A stretch of DNA of 64,000 nucleotides from Neoechinorhynchus agilis (taxonomy: Eukaryota > Animalia > Acanthocephala), in assembly GCA_051530055.1 (NCBI GenBank), contig CM121341.1, forward strand, positions 14,672,784 through 14,736,783. Reading direction: 5' to 3'. Position numbers and translations under genes: made by a program. Positions 35,969 to 48,977 of the stretch are shown here, in pieces. How positions within the stretch are numbered: position 1 is the first letter of the stretch; the number at the start of each line of letters is the position of its first letter. Below the pieces are notes generated by a model. The model was not told where the DNA came from, searched no databases, and saw only the letters and a list, made by a program, of their open reading frames with translations.

Positions 35969-38900
35969 ATGGACGACAACAAACGGAAACATAGTCGTCT
36001 AAGTCTCGAACAATGTTTCACAAATGTGTTTGGAGTGAGTTCAATCGAAAACATCAATTGGAGGTGTTTTGTAGCTGAAGATCAATCGTCTTCATACGAT
36101 GCCACCGGGAACAACACTCAACAAAACGACCTCATTCTAGACGCTTTCGCGTCTTGTCTTGAAAATAATGTATTGTCCGCATGGAAACGATCGTCCACTA
36201 CAAGTAAAGAACTGTGGGTCTTTTGGTTTGATAATGATGAACAACACATACAAGTACGAATCGATCCGAGCTTTAAAGTCAAATATGAAGGCAAATGGGC
36301 TGCGTCCAAAACTCTGCACAAAAGAGATATGGTAAACGCAACTACTACCACTAAACAGTCATTCCCAACGGGAACTTTTTCAATAAGTTGGGAATCGCTG
36401 TATTAATCCGTTTAAAACCCCACCAGAAAATGATTTCTCTTACGCCTGCCGAATTCAGCTCTTTAAGGCTTTTCATAATGCATTCGAACGTTCACTGTTA
36501 TTGAGTGGATTTGTTCGAATCGGACGATGGTTTGTTCAACCTGAGACCAAGTCTAACTTCAACAAACAAGCCTTTTCTTTCAACTTTTTCATCCATGGAG
36601 AATGCTGGCTTTGTTGCACCCTAGATGTTCGCAGTCGGATCCCAGTGCGCCGAGTTTCCTCCTATGGCGAAGTAATGCGACTAGCTCAGTCTGAAAACAG
36701 TGTTATTCTGTCACCTTATGGACTTGAAGCTGTAATCTCAAAAACACAACCAATTATGGTAGATAAAACATTTGAAGCTATCCGAGGTCGCACAATCCTC
36801 ACAGAGTTCGCCCGTTTCTATCCCCTCGATAAAATCCATCTTGATGAACTTGTACAAGTTGAGATTCCGGCAGATACCAGGAGGTGCACAATGCTTTATC
36901 CACGACAATATATCCTGTACGTACAAGATTCTAAACCAAAGATTTTCGCAAACTACTTTAAACTTCCCGATGATTTTTGTGAAATGCAGATGAACCGATT
37001 GTACACAAAAAGGACTTTGTCTCGTGGGGCAGCATCAGCTTCATGCGATCTCGTAAATCCACCACTAAGTGAATCATGCGGCACGATCACTCCTGCCACC
37101 ACGATTGAACAGACTGGTTCAATTATGAGACAAGAAATTGATGATAGGAAAAGGCGAGCTGAAGTCAGTCCTGAGATCTCGAATGAAGCAATGGAATGTG
37201 ACATTTCTGATGAATGTGTTTCAGTTGATGGAAAACGGCGGAGAGTAGAAGAAATTGTAAATGTACTTCATAATGAACCAACGATTAATCCGTATAATTT
37301 CGAAATTGATCCGTTCGCAAAGCCAGGGGTACCTCCAGAACAAACAACTTCAACGCTCTCACAACCGCCAACCTTAATGACAGTGCATTTTCAACCTCCT
37401 CCTTCGGTAAAACCACCAACAAACATATACAGTCGAATGATTGCATCGCTGGAAGCGGTTATATTAACACCGCCGGATAGTACTAAACAACCTTTTCACC
37501 ATCACCTCCAACGTGCCAGCGTAATGAACACTCTCTCACCCCAAGTACTTGCGGCCCGCGCTTTATCGCCAGAAACTAAAAAGACAACAGTGGTTCCGAA
37601 CGCAGTGGATAAATCGATTAAATCAACAAAAGTGATTGATTCGCCGCCGTTGTGCTCGACGTTGATTTCGTACAATCCGGAGAAAGGACGAATAATAGTA
37701 GCAAGTCTTAAGAAACCAAGTCGTCGAATAAAAACACAACGGAGACTAGTGGAATCCGTGGACCCACAGCCAAAACCTTTTGAACCAAATGCAGAGAAAA
37801 GCACTACTGTCGGTTTGAATAGTGTTGCGCTCAACATTCGATTGAGCGATTCAATCGTTAATCTTTGGAGAGATGTCAACTACGACACGTGTACCTCTTG
37901 CGCTTGCGGACGAAAGGAATCCACCGAATCTCAAGAAAGCCAGCTTTATTTGGGTCACCAAAGCAACACGAAATGGGCTTGTTCATGTGGATTCAGCGCA
38001 GTAGTACATCAGATTCGCATAAATGAATACTCAAACGGTCTATTTGAACGCGATCTCTCCGGACCGATTCCAAAAGTGGACATGGAACGACTTGAAGTCA
38101 TCCGTCAACAGCATTCCACACCTTTTGTCCTACATGAGTATGAAAAGAGTTCAGTTCAATTCTACAGTCCTACAAATAAAGTGATCGACAAAGCATGCGT
38201 ACAAACGGTCCTATCTCCAATCTACAGGGATTCTGATTGCTCCCAGAGTCCATTCCACTGGTGGACTAATACGAGGAAAACTGGTCCGTACACTCACGCT
38301 GAGGGAAATAAAGAAAAACGAATTGTTCAAATGGCATTTCACGTTGTTCGACTGCTTAAAGAATGCCTGGCGATAAAGCGGAATGTAAAGATGGTAGACA
38401 ACTGCTTCGTTGGGCCATTAACATGGACCCAATTTCATCACCTCATGAATACGAAACAACAAGACCGTCTCCAAAAAACCCAGACAGACGCAAACGATAA
38501 ACTTACGCAACAAAGCCCAACCCATCTACCAATTCCTCATCTACAATTCGGAGACTCAATCTGTGCTCCCGCGAAACAGCCAGGGTTTCGGAGCTATTTA
38601 AGCGCCTCACCGTTCATCCTTAAAGTTTGGGAAACCCTCGATCTCGAGCCTTACGGAGGAAGGCGCAACGTCGGTTACGTTGTAAGCAGCAAGCATTCTC
38701 GTAAACACGTCTACCACACTAGGGAATTCGGCTGTGAAGGAAAGAGACGGGGAAGCATGGGCCCTTTTGTGGTTGTTATTCTTGTCGTTTGAGAAAGAAA
38801 TAAAAGACACGCAACTTCCTTAGGAATTGAGACAATTCGTCATGCGCCCTTAGGCGAACCTGGATGCCGTGTCGGTTTCTATAAAGTTCCCCATTTTGAA

Positions 38901-41043
38901 TTCGGTGAACGGTAATTTTTGATCCAAGAATTCGTTCATGTTTTCTAATTTGTTTTTATTCTAATCGAAAGGAATGCAAATTTTGACCTAAACACGAGGG
39001 TCGTTCGTGAATTTTACCCATATTTAATTTTTATTATTTGTTTTTTCGTGATCGAGACTGTCTGCAATAATTTCTCTTTCGAGCCACACTGATGAACTTG
39101 TGATGTTCATAACAAATGTAAGCATCAAATACGAGCGAATGAACCTCGGTCTCCACCGAAAAGCAGTCCGAATATTTGACGGAATATGTGTTACCCAGCA
39201 TCAGCTCGCAAGTCTCCATCACAACCTCCGCTCTAACGCTCACCCGTTCGATTCCAATCTTTTTCACTTAAAAGACAAACCTGGCGATGGTCACAGTGAG
39301 CTCATTTGGTTGGTATTGTACATTGTGGTTAACAAAAGCGAGTCTAGCCAAAATGGTTTGTGGAAAGCGGTGATACAGTTCCAACTCATTCCTGGTGTCG
39401 TGGTGCATCTTCTCTACGCAGATAAAATCTGCTCAATAACAGAGAAAGACGATTATATTCTCAGGTCTAACGCATTGAGCGTTTACTCCCGTCTTGGCCA
39501 GGACTCATTTCCCATCACTAGTAGTGATTCGACTCAAAAACGAAAAAACACAAAGCGTCTGATAAACCTCATCGAAGATCCTAAGGACACCGCTGGGCGA
39601 CCGCCGCTTAAGCGATTCCGAACATTTCAATATAATCCGCCGTTTATATTATCAGAATTAAGTTTAGATCCGACGTTACCACAGACACCCCTATTTCATC
39701 CATCTTCGGATCTTAGTCCACTGCAAAATACATTGTTACGATGCAATCAATCTGAAGCATCTATCGATCGTCCTTGTCTTTTCTTTGCTTATTGTCTATC
39801 GTCAGATAAATCATGCGTTTTAGTAACTTGCTCAGATGAACGAGGCGAGCTTTTGGAGACTCGGGTGATCAACGCGACCTTCCGGCATGCTGTTCATAAT
39901 GCGAAATGCGCAATCAACGTGGATCGAATGTGGATGCACATTAGACGTGTTGCCATTAGTCGAATATGGCAGTTCATTGTTCAAACCGTAGTGAAAGTAT
40001 GCAGACCAGTACGGCTGATCATAACGAAAGCGGGAATTCTGGGATTTGGTGAACTTAAGTCATGGGCTTGTCTATTGTCTCGTCGGTCACTGCATCATTG
40101 GGCCCCTATATTAAGAGGAAAATGCCCCAAATGCAACCCAAAGGATACGGGAAAATTGCTACAAAACCACGCTCCATCGATTGTATCTGCTTGCTTGATA
40201 AGTCTCGAACCAGAGAGTTCAATTCGCCTCTATTCACAATCTATTGATCATTCTGCATCGGTTATTGATGTGAGCTGTACTCATATCCTTACGTATCCCA
40301 CGTCAGCTCTTTTATCCCGGCAGCTAAACTTATCCCGCGACGACACTCAAACCAATTTCGACATTATCTTTGATTTTGACATAATTGACACAGATTTTAA
40401 GCCTGTCGTTGGTTTGTCTAATAGTCCTGCGAACCCATACGGATCTAAGGAGGCAGAGGATGAGGTTGACGAGAATGCAGATATCTGTAAGCTTGCTTTT
40501 GATTATCTTCAACAACACGAAACCGAAGTCCGAGTGGACGAACAACCTCTTTCTGTTGGACTATACGTCTCAACGGCACCCGCTGTTGGTGTCCCTGAAT
40601 GGATGCTTGCTCGAAATCGATTCGATGATTTGGAAAAGTGCACTACTTTCAAAGTAACCCTCCATGTCAACGTACCCAATGAAGCTGAACCAGATCAGCT
40701 GTTTAGTACGCAAAGAACGAGTTCAAATAGCGCTCAGTCCAAACGAGCAGGTTTGGCTGAACAATGTGCTCAATGTGCAATGTCCGCACTTTTGAATTGC
40801 TCTTGCCCAGAGTCGAAAGCCAAGGTTGCCGAATCAATTCGGAATTCGTCAAGTGAAACACAACCGCCGCCACATCCCCTCGATTCGACGACGACCCATG
40901 CTTCACTCAAGTTCATTCTGGAGTGTTTCCATAGATTGTCGTGGCTTACGCTGAATGAAACTCTATCCGATAGGAAATCGTGTCTGCCACTTCCAATCGA
41001 TGTTCTCTTCAAAATATATCATGCAATTCACCAAAACTCGTGA
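35969..41043 (+). CDS. MED13: Mediator subunit 13 (kinase module)
   Basis: SLEQCFTNVF, INWRCF, ELWVFWF, FKAFHNAFER...FVRIGRWFVQP, LSDSIVNLWRDVNYDTCTSCAC, CSCGFSA, GPLTWTQFH, WETLDLEPYGGRRNVGYVV, DERGELLET, EQPLSVGLYVSTAP, RLSWLT...DRKSCLP. A few splice junctions are unresolved. Confidence 0.95.
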
Positions 41044-43039
41044 AACTCTCGGAAGTCTTTAAATTTATCCCTTGTGAAATTGAGACATAAAATAAGTATG
41101 AGTGTGACTATATATGTGTACAGTAAAACCTCCCATGGAGAATTGTGGTGCTTTGGCCAGAATGCTAACTGTACTTGAAAAACTTTTAAAATTGCATAAC
41201 TAAACACTAAATTTCTTCAAGGTCAACATTATTCTTGAGAAATCCGGATAAACAGTTACTATGCGAGCATTTTGCTGGAAATCCCACATCATCTTTAAAT
41301 AGCCAGTCATTATTTTTCCAAAATCGAACACAAATTCTCAATGCATTACTTTTAAATCTAATGATAATCTACAACGAATGTTGCGCATCGGATTTCCAAA
41401 TGCATAAAAGAAGATAAAAAAACTGATTTGAGAATCGGTTTTTTTGTCATTTCAAAAATATGGTCAAGTAATCTGAAAAAACTTTGTGTCGTCTGAATTT
41501 ATCTTTAATTTTTTCTTAAGGATACCTTTTGAAAATACTGAAATTCCATCTTTATGTTCTGAAAGTATAACAACTGAGCGAAGTTAAAAATTCGCTTTAT
41601 AGTTCGCCTCGATTGAGTAAAATCGAAAATGGTATCTGTACCAATCACTGCCATTTGAACAATAATCGCGATATTCTTGATTTTTAGAAGTCAAGATCAT
41701 GTTACAAAAATGTGCAATTTTCATTATTTAAAGAAACTCTCAAGTCTGTTCCCTGAAACAATAGAGTTACAAGGAGAATTGCTGATTGAAACACAAATCG
41801 TGTGATTTTTGGATCGATCTTTATTACCAATGCGAATGCAGAAAAGTAGGAATTAGAATGGGAGGGTAGGGACCAAGAAATTCGATTTAAGTGGATTGAG
41901 TACTGGAAATACGACGTTCTCTGTTATTGAGCCATAGACGTATTTGATAAATTTTGTTGACCCCGCTTAATCGTTCATTTGTGATACCGTTCATACATTT
42001 AAGATTGTTTAACTCAAACTGTTAGCATTGATTGTGGCTGCTCCTTGCCGTATACCATATAAATTGCATAAATGTTTTTTTATGCATTGCAACTTGATTC
42101 TAAGGCATGAATCTTTTCCAGAGCAAAAGAGCTACTCCCTTCCTTTCATTATCTACGGGCCATAACCACTCGACAACCGTGAAATGTCATCTTCGCCGTC
42201 CTGGTACTTTAGTAAAGAAATCATCTCCACTCTTTATTCGTTCTTTGGGTTAGACTCTCGAACATAAAATTTAATTGCTTTTGTTTTGACGGCTCGTGCA
42301 ATCAATGTGCTCACATACGGGGATGTATAACATATGAAGAGATAAACACAAACACCTCCTTGATGAAATCCCGTCATCGTTAGCTGTGCACTTACCCTAG
42401 ATTTTAACCCAATACTCAAAGCAACCCGCTCGATGGGTTCTAATTTGAAATACATCGAGATCGGGAAAGGCGATAATTGAGCCGTTTATTCGACTGAGCA
42501 GGGAAAATGCATCTCGCCCCATGGAACTCAATGGAGCGTACTTAATGGCGGTATCGTTTTTCAGTTAGGCGAGAAAAAGAGATTGCATCCGTAGGAAATA
42601 ATGATGCTTGTCTTAAATTTAGCCTAAAGGGCAAATCCGCAACACTTCAAACTCGATAACTTGACCGGACTAATCCGCAAATCCCCGCTTAATGAATTTC
42701 TGTGAAATTTGCTTACCAATATAAAAAATTGTCCATTTTCTACCATATTTCTCTTTTAATTTCTATAAAAAGGCCCAATATCTTCTGAATTTTTGAAAGA
42801 CGTCGCTCCTCGAGTCATATCTATACGAAAACTTCATTTGATCAATTTTATCTTCCCCTTTGTCCATTCTTAAATTTCTAAAGATCATCTTTGTACTGGT
42901 TTCAAATTGATACAAAAATGTTTCTTGGAACCATTTTAGTCTTCATCTCGATGAAAAAAGTCGAATATAAATCTAAAATACACTAAGAAAACTGCAACAA
43001 TTTGAATCATTTTGATTTATCTTTACTCTCTGATAGAAG

Positions 43040-43240
43040 CTGTCTTAAAACTGTTATTTAGGTCTTCACCCGGAAAAGACATTTCCATCATCAGTTATAA
43101 CAGATCTCTGGGTTTTTTTAGAACTGATGATGAACCCGACGATATTCGAAACGTCTTTACTGCAAAAAATTCTTTACCGCGTGAAGACTTCTAAATAACA
43201 CTTCTAATCATATACCCCGATATCTCCTCACATATCGGCA
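43040..43240. mobile_element. Mini inverted-repeat element with a minimal hammerhead motif (family A, locus 1)
   Basis: Right arm CTGATGA-T-GAA-cccgacgata-TTC-GAAA-CGTC (43124-43155), then an A-tract and TTTACCGCGTGAAGAC. Left arm (~43055-43096) is an inverted copy lacking stem II. Confidence 0.7.
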
Positions 43241-43666
43241 AAAGCTGTCTTAATTTTCCCTTTTTCCCTGCCCAATACATGTATCAGTTTTTGAACCTGG
43301 ACGAAGCGAAAAGAGTGTTCTTTAGTTTGCCCCCCCTTAAAAACTTAAACACCGTATAATTTTGCAACTTGTTTTTTAAAGACCACTCTTCCAAGAACTG
43401 CCATGTTTCCTCATCAAAATACGTGTATTCTCACAAACATCGGCCTACACTCAAGGTACCATAAATACAAATCATGGTTAAAGCTCTTCCTTTCCAAAAT
43501 CTCCATCGAACTTAGTTCCTTAGCGTCAATGCGGCGCCTTACTACTGCACCACCTCACGACAAAATGCGTTAATGATTCATATGCATCGAAGAAGACGGA
43601 GTTGTAGACAGCACACTCACTAGACTTTTAGAGAAATGAGGATTCGTTTTGTCAATTATTCTAGAT

Positions 43667-46600
43667 ATGTTAATAACATTTATTCTTGCTTTATTGCAAA
43701 TAAGTTTTGTTCATGGCACTAGCAATCTTGGGACTAAAGCTCGCTTTGATCAGTGTGCGCTGGACTGTATAATGTGAGTGGTCAAAAACCTTCTTTCAAA
43801 CTAATGAAACCCTTCACAGGCTTCAAGGAAACACGAGTTTCCGAACAACATCGATTCGATTTATGACGCTCAATGATGAGTATAAGAGACAGTACATTGC
43901 GTGCCGTAATGCAACTAGTTATTTTGATTTTCGAATCGAAATGAATTATTTGAGAACTGTGCAGCCCAATAAGTCTTCGACCACGTCAGAATTTCCATCA
44001 AACTATCAACTAAGCCTGTCAATCCAAAACAATGCGAGGTGCAATGCACTCGTAACCAGGACTTCGATTAAAGGAGACCATGTTATCCCGATTAGAAACT
44101 TCATTCCGATTCGAATACTGCCTAACGGATATTCAAACGTGCCAATAAGGTTTGTTTTGTGAAAGAAATTGCTTTGAAACGCTATTCAAAATATCTTTTC
44201 GATTTAATGGGACATACTGATTCAATTATCTTGCGGTCATAAAAAATCTTACAAATATAGACTTTATCCACGACGAATGAAATTTACGAAATTTTATAAT
44301 AGTAACTCTACAAATAATACATTAATCTCATATATCATTGTCCTCGGGGTGAATTTGATTGTGCGTTGGCGAATCCTGCCCCCGGTGCTTTCGTTACTCA
44401 TTTATATTCGAAATATTTCACAAGGTTTTCCTTGCCTCTTCAGTCGATATCTAAAATGGAGGATATGGACATCATGCACAGCCGGTCACGTCTGGGTGTA
44501 GCTCAGATCCGCGGGTTTGCTAATACCCGAAGTGTGGGGAGTTCCATCCGCGCACACCTCTTGCGGTTTGTTGCCGACTAATTTGCCCGTCATGCTACGC
44601 AACATTGGTAGCACCAGCGTATGGTTAGATTTGTTGCCTTCCATCGTCGAATTTCCTCGGATGTGAATGGCCTCCAGAATCAGTCTTCTCCTCAGATTCG
44701 GTTCCCTGGTTAGGAATGCCGCCTTTTCGAAATCTACCCTGTGCTGGATTGTTTGCTGGTGGTTCGATATGGCAGAGGATTTATCGAATGTCCTGCATGC
44801 TTGTTTGTGCTGCGAGATCCGCTTTCTGATCCCTTGCATGGTTTGTCCAATGTAGACCTTTGGGCATTCTGCACATGGGATTTTGTATATCCCTGATTTT
44901 GCCTCTTGACTGGGTTTCCTCTTGAGAATGCCCGCAATGGATGCGCCCCGTTTGTTGTAGATAAAGAGATTTGGAACGAGGTAGTTCAGGCGCCTCAGTT
45001 TTCCGGTCGCATTGTCACTTATGTGGTTGAAGCCAGCGTATTTGGGGGAGATGTTTGCGGTATCCTTCTTCTTGCGATGCCCGCTATGTGTTGCCTTTTT
45101 CAGGCTGATTTTGATGGCATATTCAGGGAAGCCTCGTGATCTGAGAACTTTTGTGATACTTTGTTTTTCTTCTTCCCAATCCCTGCTTTCTGAAGAAATC
45201 ATCCTGGCCCTCTTGAAGTAGGACGTTGCCGCTGTTATTTTATAGTGGAACGGTTGGTGGCTCGACCAGTGAGGTGGACCCCATGGTATACCTGGCTTGC
45301 GGTAGAGCTGTGTTTTGATGTTGCCTTTATCATCGTGTATTATCCTTACGTCCAAAAAGGAGATAGCCCCCTCTTCATCTTCCTGAGTCATTGACCACTG
45401 GATGTTTGGAGACTCAGGAAGATGAAGAGGGGGCTATCTCCTTTTTGGACGTAAGGATAAAACACGATGATAAAGGCAACATCAAAACACAGCTCTACCG
45501 CAAGCCAGGTATACCATGGGGTCCACCTCTGCAGGATCCAAACATCCAGTGGTCAATGACTCAGGAAGATGAAGAGGGGGCTATCTCCTTTTTGGACGTA
45601 AGGATAAAACACGATGATAAAGGCAACATCAAAACACAGCTCTACCGCAAGCCAGGTATACCATGGGGTCCACCTCACTGGTCGAGCCACCAACCGTTCC
45701 ACTATAAAATAACAGCGGCAACGTCCTACTTCAAGAGGGCCAGGATGATTTCTTCAGAAAGCAGGGATTGGGAAGAAGAAAAACAAAGTATCACAAAAGT
45801 TCTCAGATCACGAGGCTTCCCTGAATATGCCATCAAAATCAGCCTGAAAAAGGCAACACATAGCGGGCATCGCAAGAAGAAGGATACCGCAAACATCTCC
45901 CCCAAATACGCTGGCTTCAACCACATAAGTGACAATGCGACCGGAAAACTGAGGCGCCTGAACTACCTCGTTCCAAATCTCTTTATCTACAACAAACGGG
46001 GCGCATCCATTGCGGGCATTCTCAAGAGGAAACCCAGTCAAGAGGCAAAATCAGGGATATACAAAATCCCATGTGCAGAATGCCCAAAGGTCTACATTGG
46101 ACAAACCATGCAAGGGATCAGAAAGCGGATCTCGCAGCACAAACAAGCATGCAGGACATTCGATAAATCCTCTGCCATATCGAACCACCAGCAAACAATC
46201 CAGCACAGGGTAGATTTCGAAAAGGCGGCATTCCTAACCAGGGAACCGAATCTGAGGAGAAGACTGATTCTGGAGGCCATTCACATCCGAGGAAATTCGA
46301 CGATGGAAGGCAACAAATCTAACCATACGCTGGTGCTACCAATGTTGCGTAGCATGACGGGCAAATTAGTCGGCAACAAACCGCAAGAGGTGTGCGCGGA
46401 TGGAACTCCCCACACTTCGGGTATTAGCAAACCCGCGGATCTGAGCTACACCCAGACGTGACCGGCTGTGCATGATGTCCATATCCTCCATTTTAGATAT
46501 CGACTGAAGAGGCAAGGAAAACCTTGTGAAATATTTCGAATATAAATGAGTAACGAAAGCACCGGGGGCAGGATTCGCCAACGCACAATACATTAATCGT

Positions 46601-47760
46601 ATTTATTAGTGCATTTTAAAGCATTAAAAAACAATCGTAAATTAATCGTCTTATTAACACTTTATTTTTTAGATATCGAATTTCAGCTTAGTCAAGAGAC
46701 ACGAAAATACTTCATTTGAAGTCGGTCTCGATTTATTGAACGTTTTTAAACCTTGTATTTTCATAAATACAGCACAATCGAATTTATTCTCTATCAATGG
46801 AATTCGAAAAAAGTTCGAAAATGCGTTGATTTTCCTGCTAAAATCGACAGAGGTTGATGTATTTGTCTTTCCCCAATTGTCTTTTAACCGTTCAAAATGC
46901 CTCATAAATGTCTCATTCCATGAACAGACTCGTCTCTGAAATGGGACTAAAACGATGGGTTATACACGTCACTATGGAGATCAACGGTGCAATACTAGAG
47001 TTTAAACACTTTATATGGAATCCGGACATTGATCTCAGTGAGAATCGGTCGTTTCTTTTTATTAAGAACGCGAAGAAGCACCTTGCGTTTTTTGTTACCT
47101 TTATTTTTGGAATTATTATACTCAGTTTGGCACAGAATTCCTCTTGCAGGAAAACAAAGGAGGTGAGCTGTCTAAATACAAGGAGCGGTGCTCAAAGTGC
47201 GTATGTTCAAGGTGGCCACTACTTTGGAACAGAGGCCTAAAATCAGAGTCCACATGAAGGAAATGGTCAGCGAGTACAATAGGCGTCGTCCGAACACCCC
47301 GAATAAACGCATATTTAATGCTGTACAAAATATAAGGCCTTTAAATAAGCCTGTTTTGGTAACAGACAATGTGAAGAAGGATCAAATCGATAGGTCTACG
47401 AATTTCAACAAAAAACGAAAAGGGAAAAAGACCATTTTGAATGGAATGGTGTCCGATCAAGGCAATTGTACACACAAACCGAGACAAACGTTCACCGTTC
47501 AGCAACCTAGCACTTTAAAGATGACCGAGAAGAAGCTACCGCGGTTCGTGAAGTCAGAGTCGAACGAATCTTGTTCCGTTCGTTCACGAGAAAAGAGTCA
47601 CAATATTTGCGAAAGTGTTGGAACGAAAACAACGGATGAAATCGATTCTGCTGAGAGTTTGAAGAATTCGAAACATGTAGATATTGTTAAAGTTCAATAT
47701 TCACAAGAAGAAGCAGTCTCAGTTTATAGACCAAGTAAATTCATTACATCGTTTGCGTGA
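43667..47760 (+). CDS. Orphan type I membrane protein (~405 aa), four exons
   Basis: Exons 43667-43773, 43820-44149, 46928-47162, 47212-47760 join in frame with GT-AG introns: signal peptide MLITFILALLQISFVHG, N-x-S/T sites, TM-like LAFFVTFIFGIIILSLA, basic low-complexity tail. Intron 2 (44150-46927) contains the Penelope-like palindrome. Confidence 0.65.
44404..44450 (-). ncRNA. Minimal type I hammerhead ribozyme motif (inverted-arm copy)
   Basis: Exact reverse complement of 46497-46543. Confidence 0.8.
46497..46543 (+). ncRNA. Minimal type I hammerhead ribozyme motif in the Penelope-like 3' region
   Basis: ATATCGA-CTGAAGA-G-GCAAGG-aaaa-CCTTGT-GAAA-TATT-TCGAATAT: intact core, 6-bp stem II, bulged stem I, and a palindromic ATAT in place of stem III. 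Confidence 0.8.
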
Positions 47761-48070
47761 GTATATGACTACTTTAACTTGAATTTCCTAAGTTAGAATT
47801 TAGACATGAGATTAATCTAGCGGCAAATCGTTTAACTCCCGTCAATTTGGTGCAGTGTTGGAATTATCAGGAAACAAAACCAGCGGCAAAGTAACTTCAG
47901 CCAATCACTAAATCGTTTCTAAATTTAACGCATAGATTAAAATTGAACTCTAATAGTAAAGACCACATAACACAAAAAGGTAAAATCTTAACATATGTTT
48001 AAAATTTCATTTAAAAATAGGGATTCGGACAAAAGATTCTAGGCCCACAACCAGTACATTCGTCCATCAG

Positions 48071-48977
48071 ATGCCTTCCTACAGTCCAAGGTCAGTTTTC
48101 TTTTAACTCGCGTCATATAAAGATATAAATCAAAAATAGGTTAAGTTTGATGTTTATGGGAAATTATGCGGCGAATCTTGAAGTAATCCAGCCAAAGTGC
48201 GACATTTAAAGTATTTTTTCCAAATTCATATTTGTTTTTAGGTATATATACACTGGAAAAGCTGACAATCCTCTGATCAATGGCAAAAGGGAGAAGGCGC
48301 TAAATGGTTGTCCATTTGCGCCTTATCTGGAATCATGGTTTGTTTGTTTTCGTCTATTTAATACTGTCAATTATATCGGGACCAGGAGATGCTTTCAGAA
48401 GTTTCGCTATTTGCGAGCAGGTACAACATGATTCTTTTATTAAACCGCCGTGTGCTCATCCATTTTCTCTTCTAGTTTACGCGGGTGAAGACCCCTCTCC
48501 GCCGTGCTCTCCGTTTGAAAGCTACAGAGAGCCATGGGAAGACATTACAAATCCTAAAAACGTTCCCAGAGAAAACGAAATCCATCCCGATGACCCACGA
48601 CTAAAGAACTTCCTTCCACCCAAAGAACTCTGGTGAGTTCTCAGTTGTACTTTTTTGCCTAGTTCAACCAAAATTGTAAGGGCATACACAATCACTCCGC
48701 AAAGAACAGAGGAATCCGATTTCGATTTTTGGCTCAACAGAGATTTTTCAAGGGTATTTTTTTTATTATATTCATAGAAAAGCGAAACTTCCCCTCAAAA
48801 CAGATTAACCTAAGTCTCATGAAACCCCCATCACTGGACCAAGACCTGACCCAAAGTCAACTGTATCCAAGCGACGGTTACATGAGCAACAAAGACCGGA
48901 TGAGGGAACTTGAGAAAAAGCTAAACTACCCGGACTATCATCTTCCGGATCATTTATTACTCAGATCTAAAAAATAA
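48071..48977 (+). CDS. Unidentified small multi-exon, proline-rich protein
   Basis: Candidate exons join as MPSYSPRYIYTGKADNPLINGKREKALNGCPFAPYLESWRCFQKFRYLRAVYAGEDPSPP...DDPRLKNFLPPKEL...RELEKKLNYPDYHLPDHLLLRSKK with short GT-AG introns. Family not recognised. Confidence 0.5.

Follow-up and report, generated by a model that had tools for sequence, protein, structure and literature searches.

A recent head-to-head insertion of a Penelope-like element with nearly equal arms in Neoechinorhynchus agilis

A stretch of 64,000 nucleotides from the genome of the acanthocephalan Neoechinorhynchus agilis (hereafter, the window) contains a 2.26-kb palindrome made of two copies of a mobile element that point outward. 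The question raised by this locus is whether the two copies arrived in one integration event or in several, and which features, if any, set the arrangement apart from other insertions of the same family. We describe its anatomy, the family to which it belongs, the recurrence of its layout in the genome and the single duplication that flanks it. The palindrome is very probably the product of a single, recent retrotransposition of a Penelope-like element (PLE), which left a head-to-head pair of 5′-truncated copies whose 3′ ends face the host DNA.

Anatomy of the palindrome and identity of the element

A repeat search identified two inverted arms of 1053 nt each, at 44358–45410 (− strand) and 45537–46589 (+ strand), 126 nt apart. 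When the arms were compared base by base, a single mismatch was found (T at 45339 of the left arm, in element orientation, vs. A at 45608 of the right arm), and complementarity stopped at the arm ends, with no outward extension; the 2.26-kb palindrome with two 1053-nt arms and one difference, as given in the preliminary description of this DNA, is confirmed to the base. The whole pair is bracketed by a direct repeat, AATACATTAATC, with one copy at 44316–44327, adjoining the element tail, and the other at 46587–46598. This is the single 12-bp flanking duplication noticed previously, and its position around the pair as a whole supports the one integration event that had been proposed. The first 3 nt of the right copy are also the last 3 nt of the element (the terminal AAT), and 5 of the 6 last nt of the left copy resemble a continuation of the tail, so that, with microhomology at both junctions, the host duplication is read as 9–12 nt. 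The target is AT-rich, and the flanks are two different host sequences, each single-copy in the assembly.

The assembly (46,219,100 bases in 102 contigs) was searched with one arm as the query, yielding 57 matches with 84–100% identity; for the 1053-nt arm, a copy at C2:11805239–11806291 is listed at 100%. The search for a full-length, RT-bearing copy, suggested along with the preliminary description, succeeded: such a copy was found on another contig (contig 13) as a 2565-nt unit (L033:2322–4886), ahead of which lie a 156-nt pLTR and, in inverted orientation, a tailed 3′ fragment of 145 nt. By BLAST to this unit, the left arm (44358–45410, −) is 5′-truncated and corresponds to unit positions 1513–2565, comprising the end of the RT, the linker, the GIY-YIG endonuclease and the 3′ UTR, with an intact ORF of 301 aa that has a GIY-YIG match (44486–45391, −). 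The right arm is likewise 5′-truncated and ends in a short, tail-less 3′ end; it corresponds to unit 1506–2565 and occupies 45530–46589 (+), given that the 7 nt at 45530–45536 are genuine element sequence matching the full-length copy (L033:3827–3833), which places the beginning of the right copy at 45530. Each arm runs out to unit position 2565, and both junctions with host DNA are, as had been stated, 3′ ends of the element.

Between the arms, positions 45411–45529 (+) are a 119-nt sense copy of arm positions 22–140 (unit 1534–1652 by BLAST), which has the right-arm A allele at the variable site and is one half of a 119-bp inverted repeat, the other half being the innermost part of the left arm and the loop being 21 nt long. 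An ORF of 356 aa (45391–46461, +) links the inner end of the left arm, the 119-nt segment and the GIY-YIG ORF of the right arm in a single frame; this continuity, which reflects an offset of 147 nt, a multiple of 3, is probably incidental. Both junctions of the centre are unique genome-wide when searched in the assembly, and the palindrome is therefore without a source copy at another assembly locus. Duplication of the palindrome from elsewhere is ruled out within the assembly by the same result, the centre junctions being found nowhere else.

The 30 nt that separate the left arm from the 12-mer on its outer side (44328–44357, −) are equal to unit positions 1–30, in agreement with their previous reading as additional element tail. 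At other loci, the element end takes two forms, namely, the same last base followed directly by host DNA, or 30–35 extra nt, and in the full-length copy, the element end within the pLTR is succeeded by the same 30–35 nt, which lead into the 5′ region immediately ahead of the ATG. The 30 nt are the published PLE tail, a 30–40-bp extension that is often present at one insertion end only (PMC8557442) and has been explained by two adjacent internal RT start sites whose spacing equals the tail (PMC11167929). In the window insertion, the tailed end is on the left and the tail-less end is on the right.

The Penelope-like identity assigned in the preliminary description is upheld by the proteins. The full-length copy encodes an ORF of 826 aa (L033:2278–4758) with RVT_1 (E = 3e-11) and GIY-YIG (residues 691–728 of 826), and the two arm ORFs, which are intact and end at the natural stop, match PF01541 at 23.5 and 23.2 bits (gathering cut-off, 22.6). 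The YVDD motif is found in the full-length ORF, the window arms retaining only the part downstream of it, and DDKG is present in both arms as well as in the full-length ORF. In the translation, read by eye and not aligned to a reference PLE, GIY is followed by C-x2-C, YIG and then His residues; between the DKG motif and GIY, there is no Cys. A CCHH zinc-finger motif with two Cys between GIY and YIG is a criterion for EN+ PLEs (PMC8557442), as is a DKG motif after the RT core (Arkhipova 2006, cited in PMC8557442). By its sequence motifs, the element is a canonical C-terminal-endonuclease (EN+) PLE. A zinc-finger linker of the form CX2-5CxxC between the RT and the EN is found in Neptune and Nematis (PMC8557442), and its absence here points to the Penelope/Poseidon clade, an assignment by the motif criterion only and not by an RT tree. 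The 425 database relatives contain the same three Pfam families (best E = 1e-70, 23–33% identity) and are either unnamed or annotated as 'hypothetical protein'; a PDB sequence search with the full-length protein produced no match.

The arms are 99.6–99.7% identical to the full-length unit, an identity possibly inflated by short-read polishing across identical repeats, and this value agrees with the recent age that had been attributed to the insertion. Identities of 99.5% or more for several copies, together with an intact 826-aa ORF in one copy or more, show that the family is active or was so recently.

A hammerhead ribozyme motif in the pLTR is a further characteristic of EN+ PLEs. Rfam scans of window positions 43000–48500 (E up to 1) and of the full-length pLTR (E up to 10) detected no hammerhead and gave only spurious microRNA-type matches, which were produced by the hairpin itself; the 3′ UTR folded no better than shuffled sequence. 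By eye, blocks resembling a hammerhead core can be seen at 46504–46531 (mirrored near 44416–44443), consisting of CUGAAGA, a 6-bp stem with a 4-nt loop and GAAA; a near-palindromic stretch follows the GAAA, and no convincing helix I could be drawn.

Recurrence of the layout and the near-equal arms

The canonical insertion of an EN+ PLE includes an adjacent inverted, 5′-truncated copy (Craig et al. 2021, PMC8557442, fig. 2). When the unit was compared by BLAST with 39 fetched loci, about 28 of which were counted as independent (L020/L022 and L029/L030 are duplicates of one another), head-to-head pairs were found at about 17 of the approximately 28 independent loci. An inverted pair with at most one tail is present in the window and at at least 12 other loci, and none of the sampled loci has a pair tailed at both ends. 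A duplication of 8–12 nt around the whole pair was identified in 7 independent cases (the window, L011, L020, L029, L039, L040 and L042); in these pairs, the duplication touches the tail-less end and lies 23–35 nt past the core at the tailed end. One duplication round each pair implies one integration event per pair. The palindromic layout is thus no special case: it is what has been published as usual for PLEs, and most of the family in this genome shows it. The window structure is an already published, ordinary signature of PLE insertion, and only the near-equal arm lengths and the 119-nt central sense segment are unusual at this locus.

Several other loci of the family were of note in their own right. 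In one very young pair, whose arms are 99.8–100% identical to the unit, 578 nt of unrelated DNA lie between the arms (L039:2740–3317; G000:C2:14213239–14213816), and the last part of this enclosed DNA repeats, in inverted orientation, the host sequence immediately to the right of the insertion; this suggests that flanking DNA was captured, or that the template jumped onto the target, while the element was integrating. At G000:C2:12240000–12257000 (L005, L006, L009, L018, L026, L027 and L032), at least 5 nested or abutting copies in both orientations, several of them at least 99% identical to the unit, occupy about 15 kb, a cluster that may be either the source of other copies or a hot spot for homing. 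Two element pairs are doubled together with identical flanks and duplications (G000:C1:18676097–18677612 and C1:18738516–18740031, about 62 kb apart; G000:C2:9362933–9364238 and C2:9379486–9380870, about 17 kb apart); one of the two is inverted, and these segmental duplications post-date the insertions. Another young head-to-head pair adjoins a tandem array whose period is 69 nt and whose higher-order unit is 206–207 nt (L034:1–2600; G000:C1:1333000–1335600).

The arms of the window pair end within 7 nt of each other (unit 1513 vs. 1506), whereas in all other pairs sampled the arm lengths differ by at least 200 nt. In a model with two primings, such proximity of two independent cDNA ends is a coincidence without explanation. 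Unit position ~1506 lies just after the RT catalytic motif. At an independent locus (L036:2572–2635; G000:C2:1298571), a sense segment starts from exactly unit 1506 at a head-to-head junction, and at two others (L035:2344–2475, C1:10654843; L037:2055–3076, C2:15533374), similarity begins at unit 1504. The latter two represent a diverged sister family with a common upstream sequence that differs from the unit, and the case for a general 5′-truncation hotspot at unit 1504–1506 is weakened accordingly, 2 of its 3 supporting loci belonging to that family. Spliced-leader (SL) trans-splicing or a cryptic acceptor was also considered for the 1506 boundary and dropped, in view of the bases retained upstream of the candidate AG.

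Unit 1504–1506 could be either an RNA 5′ end or a recombination boundary. It is rather unlikely that both cDNAs stopped where a discrete element RNA, sub-genomic or cleaved, has its 5′ end near unit 1506. If they did, two-ended target-primed reverse transcription would be cleanly recorded in nature at this locus, which would also display the joining of the cDNAs, including the snap-back or re-copying of 119 nt.

Formation of the insertion and its host context

From the published biochemistry of another PLE, we infer priming on two strands, two start sites and a template switch in the centre. The GIY-YIG endonuclease would cut both target strands ~9–12 bp apart, and each 3′-OH would prime reverse transcription of the element RNA. 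Synthesis from the + strand nick, on the left, would start at the distal RT start site and yield the copy with the 30-nt tail, and synthesis from the − strand nick, on the right, would start at the proximal site and yield the tail-less 3′ end. The two cDNAs would grow toward each other and stop at unit 1513 and 1506, respectively; joining of the middle by template switching would add the extra 119-nt sense segment (unit 1534–1652), and fill-in of the staggered cut would create the flanking duplication. For the centre, there are two possible routes: the left cDNA may have snapped back on itself for 119 nt and then switched to the terminus of the right one, or the right cDNA may have copied the RNA from 1652 to 1534 a second time before switching to the left one. 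The second route is slightly favoured by the allele found in the 119-nt segment, which could equally be explained if the left arm underwent a point mutation after insertion.

Symmetry as close as that of the window pair also invites the explanation that one arm was made from the other, either as a cDNA snap-back hairpin or by later symmetrisation through replication template switching or cruciform processing. The lengths of the two arms (1053 and 1060 nt), set against differences of 200 nt or more in the other sampled pairs, are what such a process would leave, and the central 119-bp inverted repeat with its 21-nt loop has the shape produced by snap-back priming. However, each arm has private sequence: the left arm alone has the tail and the right arm alone has unit 1506–1512, so that neither arm can have been wholly copied from the other. 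Moreover, the tail-less end is at the same base as at other loci, which fits a defined RT start site and not a random join, and the 119-nt segment has the allele of the right arm and the RNA, although a mutation after insertion could have the same effect. We consider derivation of one arm from the other improbable.

Separate arrival of the two copies, the second landing by the 5′ end of the earlier one in the opposite orientation, is the least credible of the explanations. PLE endonucleases can target their own sequence (PMC11167929), and nested clusters do exist in this genome (e.g. C2:12.24–12.256 Mb), but each insertion would leave its own duplication, whereas the 12-mer is absent from the centre and a single one brackets the pair; the arms are, furthermore, equally young, with one difference in 1053 nt. 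Hardly more probable is an artefact in which the inverted arm arose from a fold-back (template-complement) nanopore read or from a mis-join. MaSuRCA was used to build the hybrid assembly from nanopore and Illumina data of ~50 pooled worms, and haplotigs were purged (PMC12690905); PLE structures have been reported as troublesome for assemblies (PMC8557442). Nevertheless, a fold-back read would mirror the flanks, which here differ and are single-copy, and the 12-nt repeat at the junctions is direct, not inverted, and located exactly at both. An artefact would also have to accommodate asymmetries specific to the element (the one-sided tail, the 7 extra nt, the 119-nt segment and the one mismatch) and the recurrence of the layout, the tail rule and the flanking duplications at many loci with other arm lengths. 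A search of the haplotig-purged assembly for an empty allele or a haplotig with both flanks found only the locus itself.

The preliminary description placed the insertion within an intron of a putative host gene at 43667–47760. GT and AG dinucleotides that fit the proposed phases do exist, but the ORFs on the two sides have no independent link, so that the insertion may be either intronic or intergenic. The candidate exons, examined singly and not as a joined model, had no Pfam match and no paralogue in the same genome. In a codon-usage test, the two ORFs flanking the insertion behaved like random ORFs: they scored 0.03–0.05 bits per codon, no higher than the median for unassigned ORFs, compared with 0.12–0.18 bits per codon for genes with domains. 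Of the ORFs in the proposed gene, only that of 190 aa (47188–47760) exceeds chance length (0.17 expected per window), and a word-index protein search found no database relative for it. The nearest well-supported gene upstream of the insertion is that for Mediator subunit 13, which ends at 41043; window positions 36501–41043 (+) contain ORFs of 763 and 647 aa, the second of which matches the C-terminal domain of this subunit. Within the ORF of the proposed exon 2, a 16-nt inverted repeat (43930–43945 and 44100–44115, 154 nt apart) is 94% complementary; the 428 nt around it occur only once in the genome.

Were the region transcribed, the RNA would be predicted to pair arm to arm, with 1051 mirror pairs, and it is only in that case that the 1-kb inverted repeat would matter for the host; the editing or dicing by ADAR or Dicer and the cruciform effects raised in the preliminary description are speculation.

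Comparison with known systems

The locus has little significance beyond annotation, as a well-preserved young example of a standard PLE insertion; the words 'Penelope' and 'transposable' do not occur in the paper describing the N. agilis assembly (PMC12690905). It could serve as a teaching or benchmark case in which tailed and tail-less 3′ ends are found together in one event. By analogy, two different 3′ ends in a single event fit the two RT start sites and the two-strand cleavage seen in vitro for another PLE.

The canonical insertion architecture of EN+ PLEs was reportedly set out by Evgen'ev and Arkhipova in 2005 and by Arkhipova in 2006. The window family shares with these elements the 5′-truncated copies with an inverted truncated copy at the 5′ side, which together form inverted repeats; a tail of 30–40 bp at one end and a target duplication of variable length; an RT with a C-terminal GIY-YIG endonuclease that has two Cys between GIY and YIG; and, in the full-length copy, a pLTR. 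Unlike the canonical case, both window copies are truncated near the same point, such that the pair is almost symmetric and lacks a full-length partner, and the extra 119-nt sense segment is found in the centre. In addition, the Rfam scans gave no hammerhead match for the element here.

The closest biochemical counterpart is PAc (Poseidon of Anolis carolinensis), a lizard element whose purified protein cuts the two target strands, extends each of them and starts RT at two adjacent internal sites (Frangieh et al. 2024, PMC11167929); its targets are AT-rich with a preference for ATT (PMC11167929). The window insertion is similar in that it uses a tailed and a tail-less end at its two junctions and has an AT-rich target. 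In contrast, PAc is a vertebrate element studied in the test tube, and the head-to-head product was neither reconstituted nor explained (PMC11167929); moreover, the protein of the window family has only about 25–30% identity to any database relative. With these differences in mind, we infer by analogy a link between the PAc reaction and the window locus.

Twin priming of LINE-1, as reportedly described by Ostertag and Kazazian in 2001, is said to involve priming by both nicked strands, with a second primer that anneals internally, so that the two segments are adjacent and non-overlapping and the inversion lies within one target duplication. The similarities with the window locus are a single event, priming from both strands, an inversion and a single target duplication. 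However, whereas only one junction of a twin-primed LINE-1 is a 3′ end, the arms of the window pair cover the same 3′ kilobase of the element, and both junctions are 3′ ends.
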